From sequence record NC_009760.1: a DNA stretch of 64,000 nucleotides; one strand, 5' to 3'. The notes below the pieces were generated by a model, which was not told where the DNA came from, did no database searches, and saw only the letters and a program-made list of their open reading frames with translations. The position numbers were made by a program, and so were the translations under genes. Shown here piece after piece: positions 56,400-63,755 of the stretch. The first letter of the stretch is position 1; the number at the start of each line of letters is the position of its first letter.

Positions 56400-56407
56400 A
56401 AAGGAGC

Positions 56408-56437
56408 AGGGGCGCACTGGGATATGCGCCCCTTTTT
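56408..56437. terminator. Intrinsic terminator between convergent operons (probably bidirectional)
   Basis: AGGGGCGCA-8nt-TGCGCCCCT 9-bp stem with T-tract downstream and A-tract upstream. Confidence 0.8.
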
Positions 56438-56520
56438 CAAACTTGTTAGAGAGAAAACCAAGTGACACTCACAAGCAGCAAGCTAGGAGTTAATGATAGT
56501 ATAAACACAAAGTAAATTCT

Positions 56521-57372
56521 TTATGCTTGTAGATTAATAATTTTATCTCGGAATTGCCCCACAGGTAGAAAATTGGATTTGCACTCGACTTCTTCCGCAT
56601 GTTTACTGAATACCTCCATCCGTCTATTTACCTTTCGCTCGTTACCTGAAAATAAATATAGTACAGTAGGAAATTTCCTTCGGTAGAATTGCGACCATTC
56701 CTCATTGATCCATTGACCACTAAGCTCCCAATCTCGGTAACGTTCCAGTTTCTTAATTTCATCACTCTCTTTCTTCTCACACGTATCCACCTCAATGAAG
56801 TACCGGTATCCGTAGTTCCCTTTACGGAAGGCAAGAATAATATCCGGTTCAATGTTATAAGTTTTCGGCTTGTGTGTATAACAAGGCATGATGTAGTCAA
56901 TACTGATAGTGCCGTCTAGTTCGAGCAACCTCGCTGACGTGTACACATCAAGTATGTTTGAATGATGACGGTATTCGATAGACAATTGCTTGGGAGGTCT
57001 TCCTCCCTTATCTAACAATCTGTACCCGGCTCGGTCAAGCCAAATGTATTGCGGTGCTGTACCCTCCCCTAACGGAAGTCTAGGGGAGTATTTATTTACA
57101 AAATGGTAATCATATAACTTACGAATGCGGTCACGACATATTTGTCGTCCCTTCAATAATGTATAAAATGGTGCAAGTTCTCTCCCGCTCCTGAGAGACG
57201 TCGGTGGTGTAAGCCAAAATAGATGCTCTGTTTTTACAACAGGAAACTGCGCCATGATTCGAAGCATCTCCACATCACGGGGTGTCAGGATAAACCGATG
57301 CTGGTCTACCCAGTCGTCTGTTATCACTGACACTTCTTCTCGTTCTGAGCGACCTCTACGTATCTTCCCCAA
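56521..57372 (-). CDS. Replication-relaxation (Replic_Relax / MOB_C-type) relaxase
   Basis: TTG start after GAGGG; N-terminal winged HTH (LTPRDVEMLR...RIRKLY); YRHH; EPDII...FIEVD restriction-fold motif. Confidence 0.82.
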   Translation of the reverse strand: MGKIRRGRSEREEVSVITDDWVDQHRFILTPRDVEMLRIMAQFPVVKTEHLFWLTPPTSLRSGRELAPFYTLLKGRQICRDRIRKLYDYHFVNKYSPRLPLGEGTAPQYIWLDRAGYRLLDKGGRPPKQLSIEYRHHSNILDVYTSARLLELDGTISIDYIMPCYTHKPKTYNIEPDIILAFRKGNYGYRYFIEVDTCEKKESDEIKKLERYRDWELSGQWINEEWSQFYRRKFPTVLYLFSGNERKVNRRMEVFSKHAEEVECKSNFLPVGQFRDKIINLQA

Positions 57373-59764
57373 GTCTCACACCCTCCTCGTCATCTATATC
57401 GTCATATGATGCTAGTAGTTCTTTGTATTGTTTGATATTCATCTTGAGATTCCGTGCGTTATTGTGAAGCCTTACTTCATCATAGCTTCGTGGAGCAAAA
57501 TGCATTCGCCACTTCTCCTCTAATTCCTTGTCACGACCAAACTCTTCCGGAACATCTAGACCATGAAAGATAAATGGAGGCAGTGCGCTCTTACCAACAT
57601 ATGTTTTAAAGTACCAGTGGTATTCCAGTTGTTCTAATTGCTTTAGTTCTTCGACGCTGATGCTAAGTTCTTGCGCCATAATCTTTAGGTTCTTTAAGTC
57701 GAGTCCACCACCAACTAATATATGAGGATTCATCCCGATGATTTGTTGCCATAACGCTTCGTTCTTTGATGACACTTGCGATGGATTCTGTATGAGGAAG
57801 TTGTCGCTCACGCCGTATTTCCGTGACTTCGATATAGATAGTTCAAAGATAGGTGTCGCATCCATATAGGTCTGCGGTTCGTCGTACATCTTATGATGAA
57901 TCGGCGGTAGCTTTCCTTGTTGCAGTAATCCTTCTCGCATAAGTGTCGCTGTCCAGTAACCATAGTTTAGGAAGCTCATCATCATGCGCTGCTCATTCTC
58001 AAGGAAGACACCGTTCGATAAATTGTACAGTACCCACTTGCCTTGATTCATCCAGTTGAAGATGTCGAGCTTACCTCCTGTTCCGCAGAAGATCGGGCCG
58101 AGTCGTTTGTTATATTGCAAATTATCTAATCTGTATAAAATAGGTTGCAGGATTTCAGTTACCTGACTATCACTCTTTACAATCTTCGGAAACTCTGTTT
58201 TCCACCAAAGGAATAATTCCGGATTACTCTTTCGTATCGTAGGCAAGAACTTACGACGGTACTCTTCATCTCGCATAAGAAGAATCAGTTCTAAGAAAGT
58301 CGCATCCGGATTACTAAAGACAGTCATCGCTGCTTTCCGTAAGAAACTATTCATCCGGTGATTGTGTGCTGTTTTAAAATACACCTCAAAGAACTCTGCA
58401 AACATCGCCCCTATTGTATCGCTATCTCTACCCAACGAGGAGAAGTTAAAGATATGGGGATATTTTTCGTCTGCGAAATTAACAAGTACAAGTTTTCCAC
58501 GCTCCTCTTCCGGTGTAGATTCGATAGCTTCGAGATAAAGTCTGCCGTCAGCAACATCGAATATTGACCCTCCGTGACCAGCTTCCATTGCTCCGTTTTT
58601 GAAGATTTTAACCGCTGTAGATTTACCACTTCCGGGAGGTGCAATCCAGAGTCGGGCTTTGCTCGCAGTGTCACGGTTAGCGACACTAAATCCCACCAAT
58701 GATCCCTCGGTAGCATACTCAATGCTATGTCCAATTGGGATAATATCTCGTGTAAGTCTTTCATCGACAGTCGTTTCATCCGGCTTCATCCTCTCTAACT
58801 TTCGTGTTGTAATCTCTTTAGTTGGAAGGCGAAGTAATACTTGTAGTTCATCATCACATAATAAACTTGCTGTCGTTAGCACCGGCATCTTACGTGTACG
58901 CATTGCCTCTAGTGTAGACTTCTTTCTAATAACAGGAGACATTTGCCAGCTATTATAATAGCCCGTACTTTTAAAACAAGATGCGATGGATTCAATGATG
59001 TCATTTCGGCGCTCATACGTATTCGCATAGACAGCTACTCTCACAACAACATGATATCCAGTCTGACGTACCTTCTGATTGAACTCTTTAATTTCACGAT
59101 GACGTTTTAGTTTCAAGGAAGGTTCTTCTTTTCCGAAGGACGATACAAGATGTGTGATTTGTTTATCGAGTTTGCGTCCGCCACTTTTGAGAAAGGAACC
59201 TCCGCTATCGGCATCACCTCCATTAATATAGAGTTCGTAGGCACGTTCTATCTCGTCTTGCCATCCATCCTCTACCGGATCAATCAGCAGTTGTACAAAA
59301 ACTTTTTCATCCTTTTGTAATTCTTCGGTAACGTACAAGATGTCTTTGCATAACATAGAAGTGTCCATCCTGTTAGGGAAGAAAGGTGCTTTGGTTGTGT
59401 GAAGGTAAGAGATGAGCGTGTTTTGACAGTCTGATACGAACGGCCAAGATGAGTGGATGTATTCCTTCACCCCGCTTCCTTTATAGACAGATTGAATCTT
59501 CTCTTTCAGCATGGTACGGTTCCCTACTGGGACGGTATACATGTAGAAACTTTCGTTGCTATCTGCGTACAGTTCTTGTGCAATGATGGGTTGACCGTCC
59601 CTTAGGGATTTAAACATTTGATTGTTACGTATACTTGAGAAGGACTTCATGAGTGCATGTAAGTCCTCATTTGTGTTGTCTGTAGCAGGTGCAACCTTAT
59701 ACGATACATAGTCATGTGTTTTAAATAGACCAGGAGTGAATTTACTTTTGATTGAGTTTTTCAT
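57356..59764 (-). CDS. Conjugation-type coupling ATPase (VirD4/TraG/VirB4-HerA-FtsK superfamily)
   Basis: Walker A APPGSGKST, Walker B MYDEPQ, SRKYGVSDNFLIQNPSQ; overlaps the relaxase start. Confidence 0.82.
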   Translation of the reverse strand: MKNSIKSKFTPGLFKTHDYVSYKVAPATDNTNEDLHALMKSFSSIRNNQMFKSLRDGQPIIAQELYADSNESFYMYTVPVGNRTMLKEKIQSVYKGSGVKEYIHSSWPFVSDCQNTLISYLHTTKAPFFPNRMDTSMLCKDILYVTEELQKDEKVFVQLLIDPVEDGWQDEIERAYELYINGGDADSGGSFLKSGGRKLDKQITHLVSSFGKEEPSLKLKRHREIKEFNQKVRQTGYHVVVRVAVYANTYERRNDIIESIASCFKSTGYYNSWQMSPVIRKKSTLEAMRTRKMPVLTTASLLCDDELQVLLRLPTKEITTRKLERMKPDETTVDERLTRDIIPIGHSIEYATEGSLVGFSVANRDTASKARLWIAPPGSGKSTAVKIFKNGAMEAGHGGSIFDVADGRLYLEAIESTPEEERGKLVLVNFADEKYPHIFNFSSLGRDSDTIGAMFAEFFEVYFKTAHNHRMNSFLRKAAMTVFSNPDATFLELILLMRDEEYRRKFLPTIRKSNPELFLWWKTEFPKIVKSDSQVTEILQPILYRLDNLQYNKRLGPIFCGTGGKLDIFNWMNQGKWVLYNLSNGVFLENEQRMMMSFLNYGYWTATLMREGLLQQGKLPPIHHKMYDEPQTYMDATPIFELSISKSRKYGVSDNFLIQNPSQVSSKNEALWQQIIGMNPHILVGGGLDLKNLKIMAQELSISVEELKQLEQLEYHWYFKTYVGKSALPPFIFHGLDVPEEFGRDKELEEKWRMHFAPRSYDEVRLHNNARNLKMNIKQYKELLASYDDIDDEEGVRLGEDT

Positions 59765-59861
59765 TTGTTATCACCTTCAGTGTGCCGTAACCAATCATAA
59801 GTAGTACCATCGTATTTACGCCAAGCAGAATCGTCTGCATAAAGATAAGTGTCTGTAACAT
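59742..59861 (-). CDS. 39-aa hydrophobic membrane peptide missing from the ORF track (VirB3-like position)
   Basis: RBS AGGAGG; MLQTLIFMQTILLGVNTMVLLMIGYGTLKVITNEKLNQK; overlaps the ATPase start. Confidence 0.68.
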   Translation of the reverse strand: MLQTLIFMQTILLGVNTMVLLMIGYGTLKVITNEKLNQK

Positions 59862-59871
59862 TGTCATCCTC

Positions 59872-60750
59872 CTATCGTTTCAGTATGGCGAATCGTGCAA
59901 GCCTTCCGATTGTTTTGAGTGGTGCTAAACTGTTTGCGCCTGAGTCCATCATGCCGCGAACCCATCCCGGAGGATTCAGCATCATGTGTAGCCCGCCAAT
60001 CGCAAGCATAATCTTGATAATACCGTACTCCATACCTTGCCATGCGCTATGAGTGGGAAGCAGATTCGGACTATAAAGTATGATGGCAATCAGTCCAAGC
60101 ATAAAGCTATGAGCGACCTGCACAAAGAACTTATGAATGTTATCTTTCGTCCACATAGATAAGATACTTTCAAATGGTTTGAAGATATAGCTGACCATCA
60201 CAAACGGTGTGACCAGCATATTAAACATGAGTCCGAACCAACGATACGCATGATAGAGAAGTATTTTAAAGAGGTAGAATCCGAGTGCGAGTAAGAAGAA
60301 GAATGTAAGTACAGACATGAATATACTATTGCTAAGACCTGTTAGATGATTCACGAATACATCGTTACCTTCCATTGCTCCGCCTGTAATCAGACCCATA
60401 TACGATACGAGTTCATTCACGCCAATCGCCGTGTAATAAAAGATAAAGGGTACAATAGCAGATACAACAATCGCAATCGGAAAGCGTACAGCGATTTGAC
60501 TCATTGGTGTATAGCTGAGAGATAACGTGCGTTTAAGTCCTTCTATCATCGTAAGTACCGTAACGACTGCCATAGAGACTCCGCTCATCTTGAGGAGTAT
60601 ACCAATCATAGCAGGGTTCTTAAATAACTCGAAGGGAGTAAAGAGTACGTACTTTAACATATCGGTAAATATCCAGTTCACGAACTCGACTACGAACCCT
60701 CTTTCTCTTACGATAAGATCCGGTGCGCTCATACAACCCGATAAAAACAT
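59872..60750 (-). CDS. VirB6/TrbL-like polytopic membrane protein (start uncertain, possibly ATT at 60798)
   Basis: About 5-6 TM segments; lies between the pilin and the ATPase; the track's 61086 start overlaps the pilin gene and is unlikely. Confidence 0.65.
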   Translation of the reverse strand: MFLSGCMSAPDLIVRERGFVVEFVNWIFTDMLKYVLFTPFELFKNPAMIGILLKMSGVSMAVVTVLTMIEGLKRTLSLSYTPMSQIAVRFPIAIVVSAIVPFIFYYTAIGVNELVSYMGLITGGAMEGNDVFVNHLTGLSNSIFMSVLTFFFLLALGFYLFKILLYHAYRWFGLMFNMLVTPFVMVSYIFKPFESILSMWTKDNIHKFFVQVAHSFMLGLIAIILYSPNLLPTHSAWQGMEYGIIKIMLAIGGLHMMLNPPGWVRGMMDSGANSLAPLKTIGRLARFAILKR

Positions 60751-60776
60751 CGGTGCAATGAGTACCGCACGTTTCT

Positions 60777-61301
60777 TTAGTTTGTGTAGTTGGGGAATAA
60801 GGCTAGAAAACCTCTTACAATAGTAGCTATAACCCCTAACACTGCTGGTGCAGTAAGAACCATCGTCATGCCCGCAACGGCATCCTTGTAACGTTTCTTC
60901 GCTTCTTCTCTTAAACCAATCATACGGAAGAATCCTGCTACCATTGCCATGATGATTGCGACGCTGACACATACGCCTAAACAGATTATCTGTACCTTGA
61001 GCAGCACTTCGTCTACTTCCGGTGGTAGCTTTGCTTGATCTACTGTCTCTGCTGATGTTGGCATTGCTATCATGACATTCGTCCAAGTGGCAAGAACGGT
61101 TGTGTAGATGTATACGATAACCTTGTTTCGTTTTTTCGTACGTACCGCCTTGCCCTTTAGAAAATTTACAACATCCTTCGTGTCAGAATTGAGATTTTGT
61201 TTTGCATGGGTGAGAATATCTTCCTTGCATACAGAAACCATGTCATGCTCTACAGTTCCTTTTCGACCACGTATATTGAATGCAGGTGTCACTTTCTTCA
61301 C
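60777..61301 (-). CDS. VirB2/TrbC-like pilin precursor
   Basis: Likely GTG start 61301 (MKKV) after AGGAAGG; long leader, signal-like ...IAMPTSA/ET, two hydrophobic helices separated by the basic loop REEAKKRYKDA. Confidence 0.65.
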   Translation of the reverse strand: MKKVTPAFNIRGRKGTVEHDMVSVCKEDILTHAKQNLNSDTKDVVNFLKGKAVRTKKRNKVIVYIYTTVLATWTNVMIAMPTSAETVDQAKLPPEVDEVLLKVQIICLGVCVSVAIIMAMVAGFFRMIGLREEAKKRYKDAVAGMTMVLTAPAVLGVIATIVRGFLALFPNYTN

Positions 61302-61323
61302 GTCCTTCCTGTGGTTATCTACA

Positions 61324-61358
61324 TCATACTGTATGACAATATTCCCTCGTCTTATGAC
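61324..61358. promoter_or_regulatory. Palindrome / direct repeat in a divergent promoter region
   Basis: TCATAC-T-GTATGA palindrome; TATGAC repeated at 61332 and 61353 (21 bp apart). Confidence 0.4.
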
Positions 61359-61394
61359 TGATAGTAGTTTAAAATAAATATAAGGAGGTGGAAA

Positions 61395-61913
61395 ATGATG
61401 GTTCAAAGTAATCGTGATGTAAGTAATCAAGGTGTATACAATAACAATGGATTATTAATTGGTGCAGGTCTTGCAGGTGCAGGAGGTTTAGCGTGGGCGT
61501 TACTTCGCCGTGGTAAAGGTGCAGGAAAGATGATGGGTCACGCTGATTCACAAACAGCATCGTCCGTTGTAGCTCCGGTAGAGCAGGGATTTCAACCACA
61601 AAACTTTCTAAAGAATGCTGTTGAATCTGAAAAGCTAAAAGAAACACGAATTGGTTTAAGTACCTACTTATCTAAAAATCCTGCTAATGTAGATGGTGAA
61701 GTATCACATGCACTAAAATACAGTCAGGATAAATTCGGTGCTAAACTATGGGATGAATATGATGGTAGACCATTAGAACAAGACAAGTCGAAATGGACAA
61801 AGGATTACTTAGGATACTTAAAAAGTGACCTACGCAATAACTTCGCCGAAGAACGATTTAATCACATTCTAGATGTGGGAAGACAAGTGAGAGGGAAGCC
61901 AACACAATTATAG
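61395..61913 (+). CDS. Hypothetical protein with an N-terminal Gly-rich TM anchor
   Basis: RBS AAGGAGGTG; LLIGAGLAGAGGLAWALL followed by RRGK. Confidence 0.7.
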   Translation: MMVQSNRDVSNQGVYNNNGLLIGAGLAGAGGLAWALLRRGKGAGKMMGHADSQTASSVVAPVEQGFQPQNFLKNAVESEKLKETRIGLSTYLSKNPANVDGEVSHALKYSQDKFGAKLWDEYDGRPLEQDKSKWTKDYLGYLKSDLRNNFAEERFNHILDVGRQVRGKPTQL

Positions 61914-61936
61914 CCGGACTCAATCGAACCCGGCTA
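61911..61936. terminator. Hairpin at a convergent gene junction
   Basis: TAGCCGG...CCGGCTA 7-bp stem spanning both stop codons. Confidence 0.45.
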
Positions 61937-62186
61937 AGATGTTATCTATGACTACGCCTTCGGATGCACTTGTAACACCCGGCATTCGTATTTTAATTTG
62001 CTCTTTAGGTTTTGGTTTAAGAGGGGGAGTCGGTATCGTCTTTTGGTCAAGTCGCATCATCGCTTCGTACTTTAACCCATACCTGACCAATTGACGTAGC
62101 CTCTTTGATCTATCCTCTATATTTTCAAACGCATCTATAATATCCTTATCTCGTTTCGGGGAGAGTCTTGCTTGTAAATCAGCCAT
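61920..62186 (-). CDS. Ribbon-helix-helix partition adaptor (ParR-like)
   Basis: LQARLSPKRDKDII...RSKRLRQLVRYGL RHH pattern; overlaps the actin-like gene; alternative TTG at 62192. Confidence 0.68.
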   Translation of the reverse strand: MADLQARLSPKRDKDIIDAFENIEDRSKRLRQLVRYGLKYEAMMRLDQKTIPTPPLKPKPKEQIKIRMPGVTSASEGVVIDNILAGFD

Positions 62187-63171
62187 GTGCAATCAGCCTT
62201 CCATACTTCGCAAAGCCTCGTGCATTACCGAACTCCGGATTATCATGCTTCAATATAATATCTCCGAACTGACTTTGGAAGAATGGTGTTAATCCAGTAG
62301 ACCCGCCACCAGTGAGTAAAATCTCATGAACATCATCCGGATTCACCCACACTGGAATCTCTCCGCTAATACTTCCAACATGCATATCAATTGCAGAAGT
62401 AATTAATTCACTGATGTCTGTTGCAATACCTTTAATGTATACCTTGCGCTCACGGTAGATTTCATCTATCTGTGTCAGGTTCTTACGAATACCATACTCT
62501 TTAGCTAATAAACGACGTAACTCTTTATGGAAGTTGTTTGTAGCGGTATACAGTGTTGTAGATTCACTACGACTAAACCGACCATTGTTCATAGTTACAA
62601 TCTCTGTCGTGCGGTAACCAATGTTTACAATTACCGTTTTCGGTTTAACACGTTCCGTAATGACCTGCCCACTTTCATCGAGAATGTAATCGTAGTAGTC
62701 TCCGGCTCCTTGCGGAACGACAACCACTTTCTGAATCGTGCTACGGCACTTGCGTCCTCGGAACGAATAGTCATAGTCCCTGACAAATTCAGTTTCAATC
62801 TTATCTTTAACAAGGAAGTATTCTTCCACCGGTACGCCTGTAACCATAAGGTCAATCTTGTTCTGTCCTGTCTCATACAATAGCCCCAGTCCTGTAAGTA
62901 ATTTTACTGTCTCGTCTATTGTATCCACTTTGTTAGCTAGGAATGTATACCGGTGATTGGTAGCAAATTCGGAAGCCTTATCTCCTACGTAATACGTTTC
63001 GTCATCATACGTAAGCCACAAGTCTTTCATTGTCTCTCCATGATCTGTAGCGTTCTGTATCTCAAGTGAGGTAGGGAAGCCAATAATATTCGGGAACTTG
63101 AACTCAATGTCATCCTCTAAGTTAATGCCTTTAAACTGTTTGAAACCAATGTCGCAACCAAATATATACAT
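62179..63171 (-). CDS. parM: Actin-like plasmid segregation ATPase (ParM/StbA/Alp family)
   Basis: CDIGFKQFKG phosphate-1, VVPQG, NIGYRTT phosphate-2, LLTGGGS adenosine, GNARGF connect-2. Confidence 0.9.
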   Translation of the reverse strand: MYIFGCDIGFKQFKGINLEDDIEFKFPNIIGFPTSLEIQNATDHGETMKDLWLTYDDETYYVGDKASEFATNHRYTFLANKVDTIDETVKLLTGLGLLYETGQNKIDLMVTGVPVEEYFLVKDKIETEFVRDYDYSFRGRKCRSTIQKVVVVPQGAGDYYDYILDESGQVITERVKPKTVIVNIGYRTTEIVTMNNGRFSRSESTTLYTATNNFHKELRRLLAKEYGIRKNLTQIDEIYRERKVYIKGIATDISELITSAIDMHVGSISGEIPVWVNPDDVHEILLTGGGSTGLTPFFQSQFGDIILKHDNPEFGNARGFAKYGRLIAHG

Positions 63172-63192: not shown

Positions 63193-63270
63193 TTGTACTA
63201 CATATCTATGGCATAGGAATTGTCCATTATAACCATTACGCAAAAATAACAGGAATATTATGTAGTACAA
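63193..63270. promoter_or_regulatory. 12-bp perfect inverted repeat pair flanking a minus-strand TATAAT (63226-63231)
   Basis: TTGTACTACATA (63193-204) and TATGTAGTACAA (63259-270); each contains TGTA-n-TACA. Confidence 0.7.
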
Positions 63271-63323: not shown

Positions 63324-63755
63324 GTGACAGCTAAAGCAAAGAAACCTAGATATGCAGGTGCATATAATCGGTTATTCCCGGTTAAAGTATCTACGAGTAC
63401 ATTCCTGACAATCTATATTTTACATTTGTTAACACGAAAGGAACGTTTATATGGTAAGGAAATCATCAACGAAATCGAGAACCGCTTCGCCGGTGAGTGG
63501 AAACCTTCGCACGGTTTGGTATATCCGATACTCCGAGAACTTGAAGCGGAGGGTCTAGTAAAAGGTCATTGGATAGGTGAAAGTTCTAAGAAGACGATTC
63601 GTACGTATAGCATCACGAAAAAGGGTAAAGCAGCGTACATAGAGGAGAAGGAGAAGCACAAGGATGCATTCTCGAAATCATTCTTTATGATGGAAACGTT
63701 GTTGGGGGATTTGTATACAGACTTTGAGATGATAGATATAGAGGATTTAAAATAG
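63324..63755 (+). CDS. PadR-family transcriptional regulator
   Basis: GTG start after AGGAGG; LYGKEII...WKPSHGLVYPILRELEAEGLV...YSITKKG. Confidence 0.9.
   Translation: MTAKAKKPRYAGAYNRLFPVKVSTSTFLTIYILHLLTRKERLYGKEIINEIENRFAGEWKPSHGLVYPILRELEAEGLVKGHWIGESSKKTIRTYSITKKGKAAYIEEKEKHKDAFSKSFFMMETLLGDLYTDFEMIDIEDLK

Follow-up and report, generated by a model that had tools for sequence, protein, structure and literature searches.

What would a phage described as lytic (PMC3357382) do with a set of conjugation-like genes? The question is raised by ORF200-204 of the Bacillus thuringiensis phage 0305phi8-36 (218,948 bp), five minus-strand genes in a 64,000-nt window of record NC_009760.1; window coordinates are used throughout (record coordinate = window coordinate + 62000). 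Megablast matched the phage genome at 100% identity across 5101 bases. A sequence-only reading of this window had proposed an undescribed, minimal transfer machine that moves a prophage-plasmid without virions. The operon has in fact been published: Pathria et al. 2012 (Bacteriophage 2:25; PMC3357382) named it the "DNA translocation operon", identified ORF200 as a relaxase related to CloDF13 MobC, ORF201 as a coupling ATPase, ORF203 as a VirB6 homologue and ORF207 as MreB-like, and proposed virion-free cell-to-cell propagation. They also found plaque size and titre unchanged after deletion of ORF200-207, so ORF200-204 are dispensable for plaque growth. The term prophage-plasmid is not supported either, given the lytic description, a genome that is linear and non-permuted with terminal repeats of 6.5 kb, and the lack of an annotated integrase or repressor. 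In 2012 the known relatives were SPO1 and a few relaxase-only phages; only now are ORF204 recognised as pilin-like and ORF202 as a conserved peptide, and the coupling protein separated from VirB4 by plasmid synteny. Our preferred reading, held tentatively, is that ORF200-204 are an accessory, VirB4-less descendant of a Tcp-like Firmicute conjugation locus, kept by Bacillus phages as a membrane DNA-translocation module, a septal pump with the forespore as its likeliest destination.

Gene content and boundaries of the operon

The five genes are tightly packed: gp200 and gp201 overlap by 17 nt and gp201 and gp202 by 23 nt, and gaps of 10 and 44 nt separate gp202 from gp203 and gp203 from gp204. 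The gp204 start previously placed at 61301 is an alternative GTG, three codons upstream of the start at 61292. The terminator said to bound the operon is well supported, being a stem of 10 bp, 7 of them G-C, with a T-run (56408..56433, (-)); it has a folding energy of -20.4 kcal/mol (z = -4.25 relative to shuffled sequences) and also faces the convergent gene ORF199. A weak hairpin with a T-run between gp204 and gp203 (60753..60770, (-); -10.9 kcal/mol, z = -2.7) may act as an attenuator and so adjust how much pilin is made relative to channel. The divergent promoter claimed for the other end stands at consensus level only, sigma-70-like matches in the region numbering 13 where chance predicts 20.7, but a conserved, operon-specific motif, ATAAGACGAG-N10-CATA (61332..61355, (-)), does lie about 40 nt upstream of gp204. 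The nine-base core of TAAGACGAG-N10-CATA occurs a single time in the 219-kb genome with one mismatch allowed, and the motif is kept 53-64 nt 5' of the pilin gene in the relatives L021, L022, L029 and L031, while L030 and L032 have a diverged version. It may serve the operon as a dedicated promoter or operator; a role as target site of the relaxase is less probable.

The relaxase identity proposed for gp200 (283 aa; 56521..57372, (-)) is upheld. The protein matches Pfam Replic_Relax at 6.2e-5 (23.6 bits against a cut-off of 25.3, a narrow miss) and phrog_9381 at 4.5e-102; at G104, G116, H136, D177, E194, K208 and Y212 no variation is seen across 16-18 homologues from phages and plasmids. These matches identify gp200 as a Replic_Relax/MOBC-type relaxase with a predicted PD-(D/E)XK nuclease domain, its core intact. 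Replic_Relax has been placed in the PD-(D/E)XK superfamily, with fusion to a helix-turn-helix being usual (PMC3424549), and Pathria et al. matched the gp200 N-terminus to helix-turn-helix families and the protein to CloDF13 MobC with an HHpred E-value of 4.4e-22 (PMC3357382).

Profile searches bear out both channel-type assignments. gp203 (286 aa; 59872..60732, (-)) is a polytopic TrbL/VirB6-like membrane protein of about 6 helices (phrog_3750, 1.8e-94). In an exhaustive search, 16 of about 123-124 family representatives match TrbL_4 (best 9e-10) and 3 match TrbL; 11 of the 16 TrbL_4-matching members score 1e-12 to 1e-34 against the gp203 profile. The AlphaFold2 model of gp203 (pLDDT 49) is too poor for use. 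gp204 (171 aa; 60777..61292, (-)) is a VirB2/TrbC-type pilin-like protein: it matches T4SS_pilin at 1e-3, and of 22 family members 16 match that profile and 10 match TrbC/VirB2. Its N-terminal region is variable; it also has a hydrophobic, signal-like stretch and a conserved pair of transmembrane helices linked by the loop RMIGLREEAKKRY. The 39-aa transmembrane peptide gp202 (59742..59861, (-)) is likewise real, with one hydrophobic segment and homologous ORFs of 37-43 aa that carry the motif QTIMIG(V/I)NT at the same position in L022, L029, L030 and L031; it is absent in L021, L032 and L034. This conserved one-helix peptide, whose positional counterpart in phage Bastille is gp104, is likely a membrane tether for gp201.

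The gp201 ATPase and its plasmid homologues

gp201 (802 aa; 57356..59764, (-)) is a soluble DNA-translocase ATPase with an N-terminal DUF8128-type domain and a C-terminal P-loop domain of the HerA/FtsK/VirD4 superfamily, the latter with a helical insert (helices at about residues 441-560 by the secondary structure of the AlphaFold2 model, mean pLDDT 82). PF26449 (DUF8128) is found on its relatives in precomputed annotation, and the residues of Walker A (G378/G380/K381) and Walker B (D628/E629) do not vary. The best PDB matches of the model by Foldseek are TrwK/VirB4 (7.6e-16), HerA and TrwB/VirD4, with a target-normalised TM-score of 0.65 against TrwB. Foldseek ranks VirB4 above VirD4, and the assignment of gp201 as a coupling protein (T4CP) is therefore one of synteny and sequence, not of fold.

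On the B. subtilis plasmid NZ_CP154917 and on pCT83, a gp201 homologue and Replic_Relax lie upstream of TcpC, TcpD and TcpE. In addition to a separate VirB4 (AAA_10, 7.7e-116), NZ_CP154917 carries a gene of VirB6 size and a transglycosylase/C40 hydrolase, and no second candidate coupling protein is annotated on it besides the gp201 homologue. gp201 is related to the DUF87 ATPase (4e-15) and has no sequence relationship to the VirB4 of NZ_CP154917. The plasmid homologues are thus in the coupling-protein position and, because these homologous Tcp-like loci have their own VirB4, gp201 is, judged by homology and synteny, a coupling-protein equivalent. The single P-loop ATPase noted earlier is indeed the sole conjugation-type ATPase of the operon, but it is this specific protein and not a generic motor.

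VirB4, VirB8/TcpC and a VirB1-like wall hydrolase are lacking in the operon, as had been observed, and also, as far as tested, in the rest of the 219-kb genome. VirB4 is the only component present in all known type IV secretion systems (T4SSs). Because it is the missing part, ORF200-204 are not a minimal but complete T4SS, and they are not a self-sufficient conjugative system. The more general idea of a stripped-down DNA-transfer device adjoining ParM/ParR is supported.

One-ATPase conjugation has a precedent in the single FtsK-like TraB of Streptomyces, the cassette stays together in each of the six 0305phi8-36-like relatives examined, and some versions of the module include an M23 wall hydrolase. 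That the five proteins alone form a minimal conjugation machine for virion-free cell-to-cell transfer, as held by the earlier note and by Pathria et al., nevertheless seems improbable to us: VirB4, VirB8/TcpC and the wall hydrolase are absent here and all retained by the homologous plasmid loci, no adhesin or mating-pair function is evident, the infected cell lyses soon after infection, and deletion has no plaque phenotype.

Distribution of the module in phages and plasmids

The cassette had been taken for a peculiarity of a jumbo phage. It is instead one version of a module present in more than 100 Bacillus phage records, including the small, strictly lytic SPP1. The gp201-type ATPase is found in 104 phage records, all from Bacillus or other endospore-forming Bacillales, and a gp203 homologue in 160, of which 158 come from such hosts. 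The same ATPase query matched 26 Staphylococcus plasmids and zero Staphylococcus phages.

Bastille-like phages have the gene order ParM, ParR, pilin-like, VirB6-like, small membrane peptide, translocase. The Bastille cluster (gp110-gp103) includes a homologue of gp204 (gp106, 2.3e-9), a VirB6 homologue (1.9e-117), a 37-aa membrane peptide and an FtsK/SpoIIIE-type motor (9e-53 to FtsK), with no relaxase after the motor. The gp201-type and Bastille-type motors share their N-terminal domain (phrog_3551, 1.7e-10; hhalign, 2.8e-4), and the set, co-linear with ParM/ParR, recurs in Bacillus phages with either a gp201-type or a true FtsK/SpoIIIE motor. Reduced forms in the same order occur in SPO1 (gp27.9-27.3), Tsamsa-like phages and SPP1 (gp31-32). 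Tsamsa-like cassettes contain an M23 peptidase, and protein P0049 is an M23-VirB6-like fusion; both hint at a wall-crossing role.

A relaxase and a coupling protein without VirB4 are the standard signature of a mobilisable element; Firmicute integrative mobilisable elements commonly bring their own pair, and on Bacillus plasmids complete Tcp-like loci begin with the homologues. gp200 and gp201 could on these grounds be a classical MOB module by which phage DNA docks onto the T4SS channel of a co-resident plasmid or ICE, with B. thuringiensis conjugative plasmids and ICEBs1 as examples of helpers, and the phage genome would then reach receptor-less cells. We consider such mobilisation unlikely, although less so than autonomous transfer. 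The VirB6-like, pilin-like and small membrane genes that phages retain are superfluous for a pure hitch-hiker, SPP1 and Bastille-like phages have the motor and membrane parts without a relaxase, Staphylococcus phages lack the module although Staphylococcus plasmids have the ATPase, and no oriT was identified.

SPP1 genes 31.2 and 32 are non-essential and lie within the early PE5 transcription unit, and gp31.1/gp31.2/gp32 were proposed by their authors to form a 'trans-membrane translocon'. Together with the ORF200-207 deletion, which caused no growth defect, this makes the module accessory. The early unit and dispensability in SPP1, and the membrane location of the proteins, would also suit a complex for superinfection exclusion, defence or genome entry, one that blocks or expels rival DNA or draws in its own. 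We give this very little credence, since PADLOC defence families show no significant match (the sole hit, a weak one, is to a MADS ATPase, 8e-5), the ParM/ParR linkage and the relaxase are unaccounted for, and entry of the phage's own DNA by the operon is impossible because the operon sits in the middle of the genome (119-123 kb of 219).

Neighbouring partition genes

The ParM/ParR pair reported beside the operon is confirmed for ParM by profile and for ParR by eye. gp207 (330 aa; 62179..63171, (-)) is a ParM/Alp-family actin-like partition ATPase (ALP_N 2.8e-16, MreB-like_C 2.3e-9, phrog_691 4.8e-70). Directly 3' of it, gp206 (88 aa; 61920..62186, (-)) is a small putative DNA-binding protein with a homologue in L022 (1.3e-7); its ribbon-helix-helix, ParR-like character is judged by eye. 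gp208 (143 aa; 63324..63755, (+)), a PadR/RTP-like regulator (PadR 5e-19, RTP 4.8e-7) divergent from ParM, adjoins the cassette in all 0305phi8-36-like relatives listed (L021, L022, L029-L032). ParM also lies 5' of the translocase in SPO1, Bastille, Tsamsa-like phages, L006 and L030.

These neighbours bring to mind plasmid-like maintenance in a carrier state (pseudolysogeny), in which Replic_Relax would nick to start replication, ParM/ParR would partition, and a septum-anchored, FtsK-like motor would, during division, clear or resolve genomes, in Tsamsa-like phages perhaps with the neighbouring tyrosine recombinase. In favour of this, the RefSeq annotation of gp200 reads 'replication initiation by nicking', ParM/ParR adjoin the operon, Tsamsa-like phages have an Xer-like tyrosine recombinase 3' of the relaxase, Kirov and related phages have been interpreted as plasmid prophages (PMC10454425), and no other Rep protein is annotated on the 27.5-kb B. 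subtilis plasmid. Yet the pilin-like and VirB6-like channel proteins and the M23 hydrolase are left unexplained, the strictly lytic SPP1, SPO1 and Bastille-like phages have the module, and 0305phi8-36 encodes its own full replisome. We regard this reading as doubtful, more so than mobilisation by a helper.

Proposed function

In the septal-pump reading that we prefer, gp200 would bind, and perhaps nick, a specific site on phage DNA and pass the DNA to a gp201 ring anchored at the membrane by gp202 and gp203. gp204 would form or cap the conduit, and ATP hydrolysis would drive phage DNA across the cytoplasmic or septal membrane. ParM/ParR would move genome copies to the cell poles, the site of the pump. 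The likeliest destination would be the forespore, giving a spore with a phage genome ('virospore'), and the second choice an adjoining sister cell in a chain. The phyletic pattern lends the sporulation-septum idea some support. SPO1 forms virospores, and a role for its ParM (gene 27.9) is suspected (PMC12991052); SpoIIIE homologues are among the phage-borne sporulation-gene homologues, which are enriched in phages of spore-forming hosts (PMC10294663).

Several points weigh against this reading. The host pattern could reflect gene exchange among Bacillus phages and plasmids. The window contains fewer Spo0A boxes than expected (4 against 11.5), with none near the operon, and the likeness of the motif 5' of gp204 to sporulation-sigma promoters would be no more than loose. 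Host SpoIIIE might alone suffice for spore entrapment. A relaxase would imply conjugation-like single-strand transfer, which is at odds with a septal pump for double-stranded DNA, and SPP1 and Bastille manage without one.

Comparison with known systems

Tcp-type plasmid loci of Bacillus (pCW3/ICEBs1-like, MPF-FATA) have the same order of ATPase and Replic_Relax, with small membrane proteins just 5'. Like the phage, NZ_CP154917 encodes a channel protein of the VirB6 class and has a ParM gene close by. Unlike the phage, this plasmid and B. thuringiensis pCT83 have TcpC (VirB8-like), TcpD and TcpE, and NZ_CP154917 also has VirB4 (AAA_10) and the transglycosylase/C40 hydrolase.

The Bastille-like cluster, whose ParM-ParR-membrane-FtsK/SpoIIIE-like arrangement has been noted in phage Grass and in PMC4528723, shares homologous ParM, pilin-like, VirB6-like and small-peptide genes with 0305phi8-36 in the same order but has a true FtsK/SpoIIIE ATPase motor domain and no relaxase. 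SPP1 and SPO1 have the homologous ATPase, here preceded by small two-helix membrane proteins, and SPO1 also shares ParM and the relaxase. In contrast to 0305phi8-36, neither has a detectable VirB6-like or gp204-type pilin gene, and SPP1 lacks the relaxase and ParM.

Streptomyces TraB/Spd and Bacillus SpoIIIE move DNA between cells or across a septum with one membrane-associated hexameric motor and no VirB4. Their motors are FtsK-type, with a transmembrane domain of their own, and act on double-stranded DNA guided by short repeats, whereas gp201, a soluble protein with a relaxase as its partner, is by sequence not of the FtsK type.

Results

Over 56400-61500 the sequence matches Bacillus thuringiensis phage 0305phi8-36 (218,948 bp) at 100% identity; adding 62000 to a window coordinate gives that of the phage record. 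Its five minus-strand genes encode a pilin-like protein (gp204, 60777-61292), a VirB6-like protein (gp203, 59872-60732), a small membrane peptide (gp202, 59742-59861), an ATPase (gp201, 57356-59764) and a relaxase (gp200, 56521-57372). They are as tightly packed as the sequence-only reading had it, with gaps of 44 nt between gp204 and gp203 and 10 nt between gp203 and gp202, and overlaps of 23 nt between gp202 and gp201 and 17 nt between gp201 and gp200. Beyond ORF204 come a virion protein gene of opposite orientation (ORF205), ORF206, the partition protein ORF207 and the regulator ORF208. The five-gene observation holds, and so does its annotation. The locus had also been called undescribed, which is incorrect: in 2012 Pathria et al. 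named ORF200, 201, 203 and 207 a “DNA translocation operon” and proposed particle-free propagation in biofilms via DNA translocation, so that both the locus and the main interpretation were already published (PMC3357382). In the same work a deletion of ORF200-207 (118,397-124,982) was isolated that left plaque size and titre unchanged (PMC3357382). The description as a prophage-plasmid is unsupported, because the phage is described as lytic (PMC3357382) and its linear genome has terminal repeats and no annotated integrase.

The operon ends, as proposed, in a strong terminator (56433-56408, -20.4 kcal/mol, z = -4.25). The proposed divergent promoter was not established, given that Sigma-70-like matches in the region number 13 against 20.7 expected, that is, not above chance. 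Upstream of gp204 lies a motif, ATAAGACGAG-N10-CATA, at 61332-61355 (-), whose nine-base core has a single occurrence in the 219-kb phage genome with one mismatch allowed. Four relatives with ATPases just 57-67% identical have it too, 53-64 nt ahead of their pilin-like genes, and two further relatives have a diverged form. The CATA element and its spacing loosely resemble mother-cell sigma (sigma-E type) promoters, while the invariance of AAGACGAG points to a dedicated regulator or relaxase site; the motif could equally be a promoter/operator or an oriT candidate. A repeat search for an oriT or clt-like element gave no convincing repeat structure.

The partition protein gp207 is a ParM (ALP_N, 2.8e-16), and gp206 is a putative ParR judged by its size, position and our reading of its sequence. 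Between the divergent ParM and PadR genes, two 12-nt stretches 54 nt apart (63193-63204 / 63259-63270, TTGTACTACATA / TATGTAGTACAA) form a perfect inverted repeat, a candidate parC centromere or PadR operator. The regulator gp208, at 63324-63755 (+), matches PadR (5e-19) and also, above the cut-off, RTP, the B. subtilis replication terminator protein family (4.8e-7); across all 0305phi8-36-like relatives no other neighbour of the cassette, ParM included, is as constant. ParR and the pilin-like gene are separated by gp205 (61398-61913), which is encoded on the opposite strand (+), has a hydrophobic N-terminal anchor followed by RRGKG and has been detected as a low-copy virion protein. Its position looks like a variable insertion site, given that relatives carry unrelated opposite-strand genes there.

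The relaxase gp200 scores 23.6 bits against Replic_Relax, for which the cut-off is 25.3 bits, and its relatives exceed that cut-off. Residues H136, D177, E194, K208 and Y212 are invariant in 16-18 phage and plasmid homologues, and they fit the published placement of the Replic_Relax family in the PD-(D/E)XK nucleases (PMC3424549). A published HHpred search linked ORF200 to CloDF13 MobC at 4.4e-22 (PMC3357382). We regard gp200 as a relaxase of a recognised family that has its catalytic residues intact and is predicted to nick DNA.

For the ATPase gp201, plasmid context settles the identity better than fold does. Its AlphaFold2 model (mean pLDDT 82) has its best PDB fold matches in TrwK/VirB4 (7.6e-16, but with a TM-score of about 0.3), HerA and TrwB/VirD4, the last with a target-normalised TM-score of about 0.65 and an rmsd of 5 A over 420-460 columns. 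Identity falls to as little as 17%, yet Walker A, Walker B and several arginines stay invariant; there are also weak TraG-D_C and CD1115-family VirD4 matches. Neither sequence nor profile searches of the PDB gave anything significant for gp201 or gp200, and the gp201 family has no consistent match in the local Pfam library, DUF8128 being reached only via precomputed annotations. An FtsK-type motor domain was likewise not detected in gp201 or its family, either as FtsK_SpoIIIE in Pfam or as FtsK in PDB sequence searches.

A gp201 homologue and a Replic_Relax gene come first on the 27.5-kb B. subtilis plasmid NZ_CP154917 and on B. thuringiensis pCT83, and in both the pair is followed by TcpC, TcpD and TcpE genes. 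NZ_CP154917 has, in addition, a separate VirB4 (AAA_10, 7.7e-116), a VirB6-sized protein and a transglycosylase/C40 hydrolase, and its annotation holds no coupling-protein candidate besides the gp201 homologue. Because of this context, and because gp201 is clearly similar to the first ATPase of that plasmid (4e-15) with neither an AAA_10 match nor similarity to plasmid VirB4, we take gp201, encoded beside the relaxase, to be the equivalent of the coupling protein (VirD4/TcpA class). VirB4 had been a candidate on the strength of the top fold match, the 800-aa soluble two-domain form and the mid-protein Walker A, and was rejected on plasmid synteny and the missing AAA_10 similarity. In contrast to VirD4, gp201 lacks its own transmembrane domain, as Pathria et al. 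had already remarked for ORF201 (PMC3357382).

The NZ_CP154917 locus is a complete Tcp-like set of coupling-type ATPase, Replic_Relax, TcpC, TcpE, VirB4, VirB6-sized protein and transglycosylase/C40 hydrolase. Since MOB-suite nevertheless types this plasmid as “non-mobilizable”, we rejected the prediction of 0/113 plasmids as conjugative as evidence against a conjugative role; plasmids with Replic_Relax relaxases are probably under-counted as conjugative.

Among the membrane proteins, gp204, searched by itself, has a weak T4SS_pilin match (about 1e-3). In its family, T4SS_pilin is matched by 16 of 22 members and TrbC/VirB2 by 10 of 22, all under gathering scores, and the conserved part is a two-helix hairpin after a signal-like segment. 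By these family matches the operon contains a small hairpin protein of the VirB2/TrbC or T4SS_pilin type. Pfam gives no direct match for the VirB6-like gp203, the only membrane protein in the genome with more than three predicted helices. An exhaustive profile search with gp203 gave 124 representatives; TrbL_4 was found in 16 of 123 (best 9e-10) and TrbL in 3, and 11 of the 16 with TrbL_4 score 1e-12 to 1e-34 against the gp203 profile. The ten representatives nearest gp203 have no TrbL or other Pfam match, and since gp203 itself has none either, its assignment as a VirB6/TrbL/TcpH-class polytopic channel protein holds only transitively. An AlphaFold2 model of gp203 from a 13-sequence alignment had a mean pLDDT of 49 and was unusable for fold search. 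The original pilin and VirB6 assignments thus survive profile searches at family level, the latter transitively only.

The gp203 frame is open for 118 codons upstream of the annotated start (59872-61086, -), overlapping gp204 in a different frame, and gene callers gave matching 400-403 aa products in three relatives (P0026, P0027 and P0029). Just before the annotated start stands KKRAVLIAPMFLSGC, a lipoprotein-type signal with a lipobox and no ATG, GTG or TTG ahead of it; in another relative (P0024) the lipoprotein signal is complete (LLSGC). The extension may reflect a different true start or a frameshift link to gp204. A 536-aa metagenomic representative (P0049) joins an M23 peptidase and a gp203-like VirB6 domain in a single protein. 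Counterparts of gp202, peptides of 37-43 aa with QTIMIG(V/I)NT, occupy the same position in four relatives, and phage Bastille has one too; on this conservation we consider gp202 a real gene, and its product is likely a tether for the soluble motor gp201.

A genome search for VirB4, VirB8 and a wall hydrolase did not supply a complete T4SS elsewhere on the replicon, in line with the sequence-only reading. No VirB4-family ATPase (AAA_10 / CagE_TrbE_VirB) was found in the phage genome, in which a Walker A motif is otherwise confined, among ORFs of 300 aa or longer, to virion structural proteins, DnaB, a helicase, an exonuclease and a chaperone-type ATPase whose annotation reads metalloprotein chaperonin subunit. 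The operon has no VirB8/TcpC-like bitopic protein, and a scan of limited sensitivity over ten candidates elsewhere in the genome found none, gp68 and gp169 among them having no Pfam match. No VirB1/TcpG/CwlT-like wall hydrolase is encoded within ORF200-208; endolysins and the secreted 3D-domain protein gp62 lie far from the operon. The latter, encoded outside the window (L025:49080-49787, or 184079-184786 in the phage record), is a coiled-coil protein whose 3D domain scores 1.7e-20 and may be an enzyme that remodels the wall; its gene belongs to the second of the non-essential islands of Pathria et al. (PMC3357382). The phage set comprises a relaxase, a coupling protein and VirB6-like and VirB2-like parts, without VirB4. 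Two rival readings are possible for such a set: mobilisation via a helper channel and autonomous transfer by the phage operon. A third possible reading is exclusion; of nine proteins run through PADLOC, gp201 matched a MADS ATPase model weakly (8e-5) and the other eight had no match.

Discussion

We infer a mechanism in which the motor would receive DNA from a site-specific nuclease or relaxase and act at a VirB6-like and VirB2-like membrane complex; homology supports this arrangement. The ParM/ParR linkage suggests that the phage genome at the poles would be the substrate; carrier-state maintenance is a further rival. For the destination we favour septa, the forespore first, because of the host pattern, SPO1 virospores, SpoIIIE homologues and the null plaque phenotypes. 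The hosts of the ATPase-bearing phages are all Bacillus or other endospore formers, as are those of 158 of the 160 phages with a VirB6-like gene, and the gp201 query found 26 Staphylococcus plasmids and 0 Staphylococcus phages. SPO1 has been shown to form virospores, a role for its ParM already being suspected (PMC12991052), and sporulation-gene homologues, SpoIIIE included, were enriched in phages of spore-forming hosts in one study (PMC10294663). The null plaque phenotypes fit a non-essential, environment-only role. Against the forespore reading, Spo0A boxes are absent near the operon and depleted in the window, with the heptamer TGTCGAA occurring 4 times against 11.5 +/- 3.2 expected; the host pattern may be only phylogenetic; and the relaxase points to conjugation-style single-strand transfer.

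Tentatively, and with the odds against it, we propose that the pilin-like, VirB6-like, small-peptide and motor set with ParM/ParR forms a distinct phage-adapted, VirB4-less class derived from T4SSs, which would actively deliver genomes across sporulation or chained-cell septa and be the long-sought spore-entry mechanism of large lytic Bacillus phages (SPO1, Bastille-like phages, 0305phi8-36), with a motor interchangeable between FtsK and coupling-protein types and the relaxase as an optional loader. This touches two open questions, spore entry by lytic phages of spore formers and virion-free movement of phages between cells, both of which matter for how phages persist in soil, food and biocontrol settings. 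The locus does not open the question, having been published in 2012.

The cassette is not peculiar to this phage but represents one version of a widespread module. With gp201 as tblastn query, 104 phage records were found, 102 besides 0305phi8-36, and with gp203 as query 160. A genome-collection scan returned one locus only. In six 0305phi8-36-like relatives the pilin-like, VirB6-like, ATPase and relaxase genes are intact at the same genomic position (6/6), with ParM in only some. The order in SPO1 is ParM (27.9), 27.8, three small membrane peptides, ATPase (27.4) and relaxase (27.3); a scan of this cassette for known SPO1 promoter classes gave one weak middle-type candidate only. Tsamsa-like phages have ParM, a small protein, a 160-aa membrane protein, an M23 peptidase, a small peptide, ATPase, relaxase and a tyrosine recombinase, the membrane-anchored M23 peptidase (2.9e-18) occupying the VirB6 position, whereas the 0305phi8-36 operon has no wall hydrolase. 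Profile-profile comparison found no similarity between the gp204 family and these 160-aa proteins, and the small membrane proteins of SPO1, SPP1 and Sophrita have no Pfam match. SPP1 carries gp31, two two-helix proteins and the ATPase gp32, without a relaxase; its genes 31.2 and 32 are non-essential and belong to an early transcription unit, for which a membrane translocon was suggested (PMC6316719). Because the same machine occurs in two phages of B. subtilis 168, SPO1 and SPP1, and this host is genetically tractable, its function can be tested directly by simple deletions and spore-carriage assays. Bastille encodes ParM, a ParR-like protein, homologues of gp204 (2.3e-9) and gp203 (1.9e-117), a 37-aa peptide and a motor that is like gp201 in its N-terminal domain but, unlike gp201, a true FtsK in its C-terminal domain (9e-53), and no relaxase follows it, whereas 0305phi8-36 has gp200. 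The module is hence a recurring natural experiment, in which the same membrane parts are combined with two motor types and with the relaxase present or absent.
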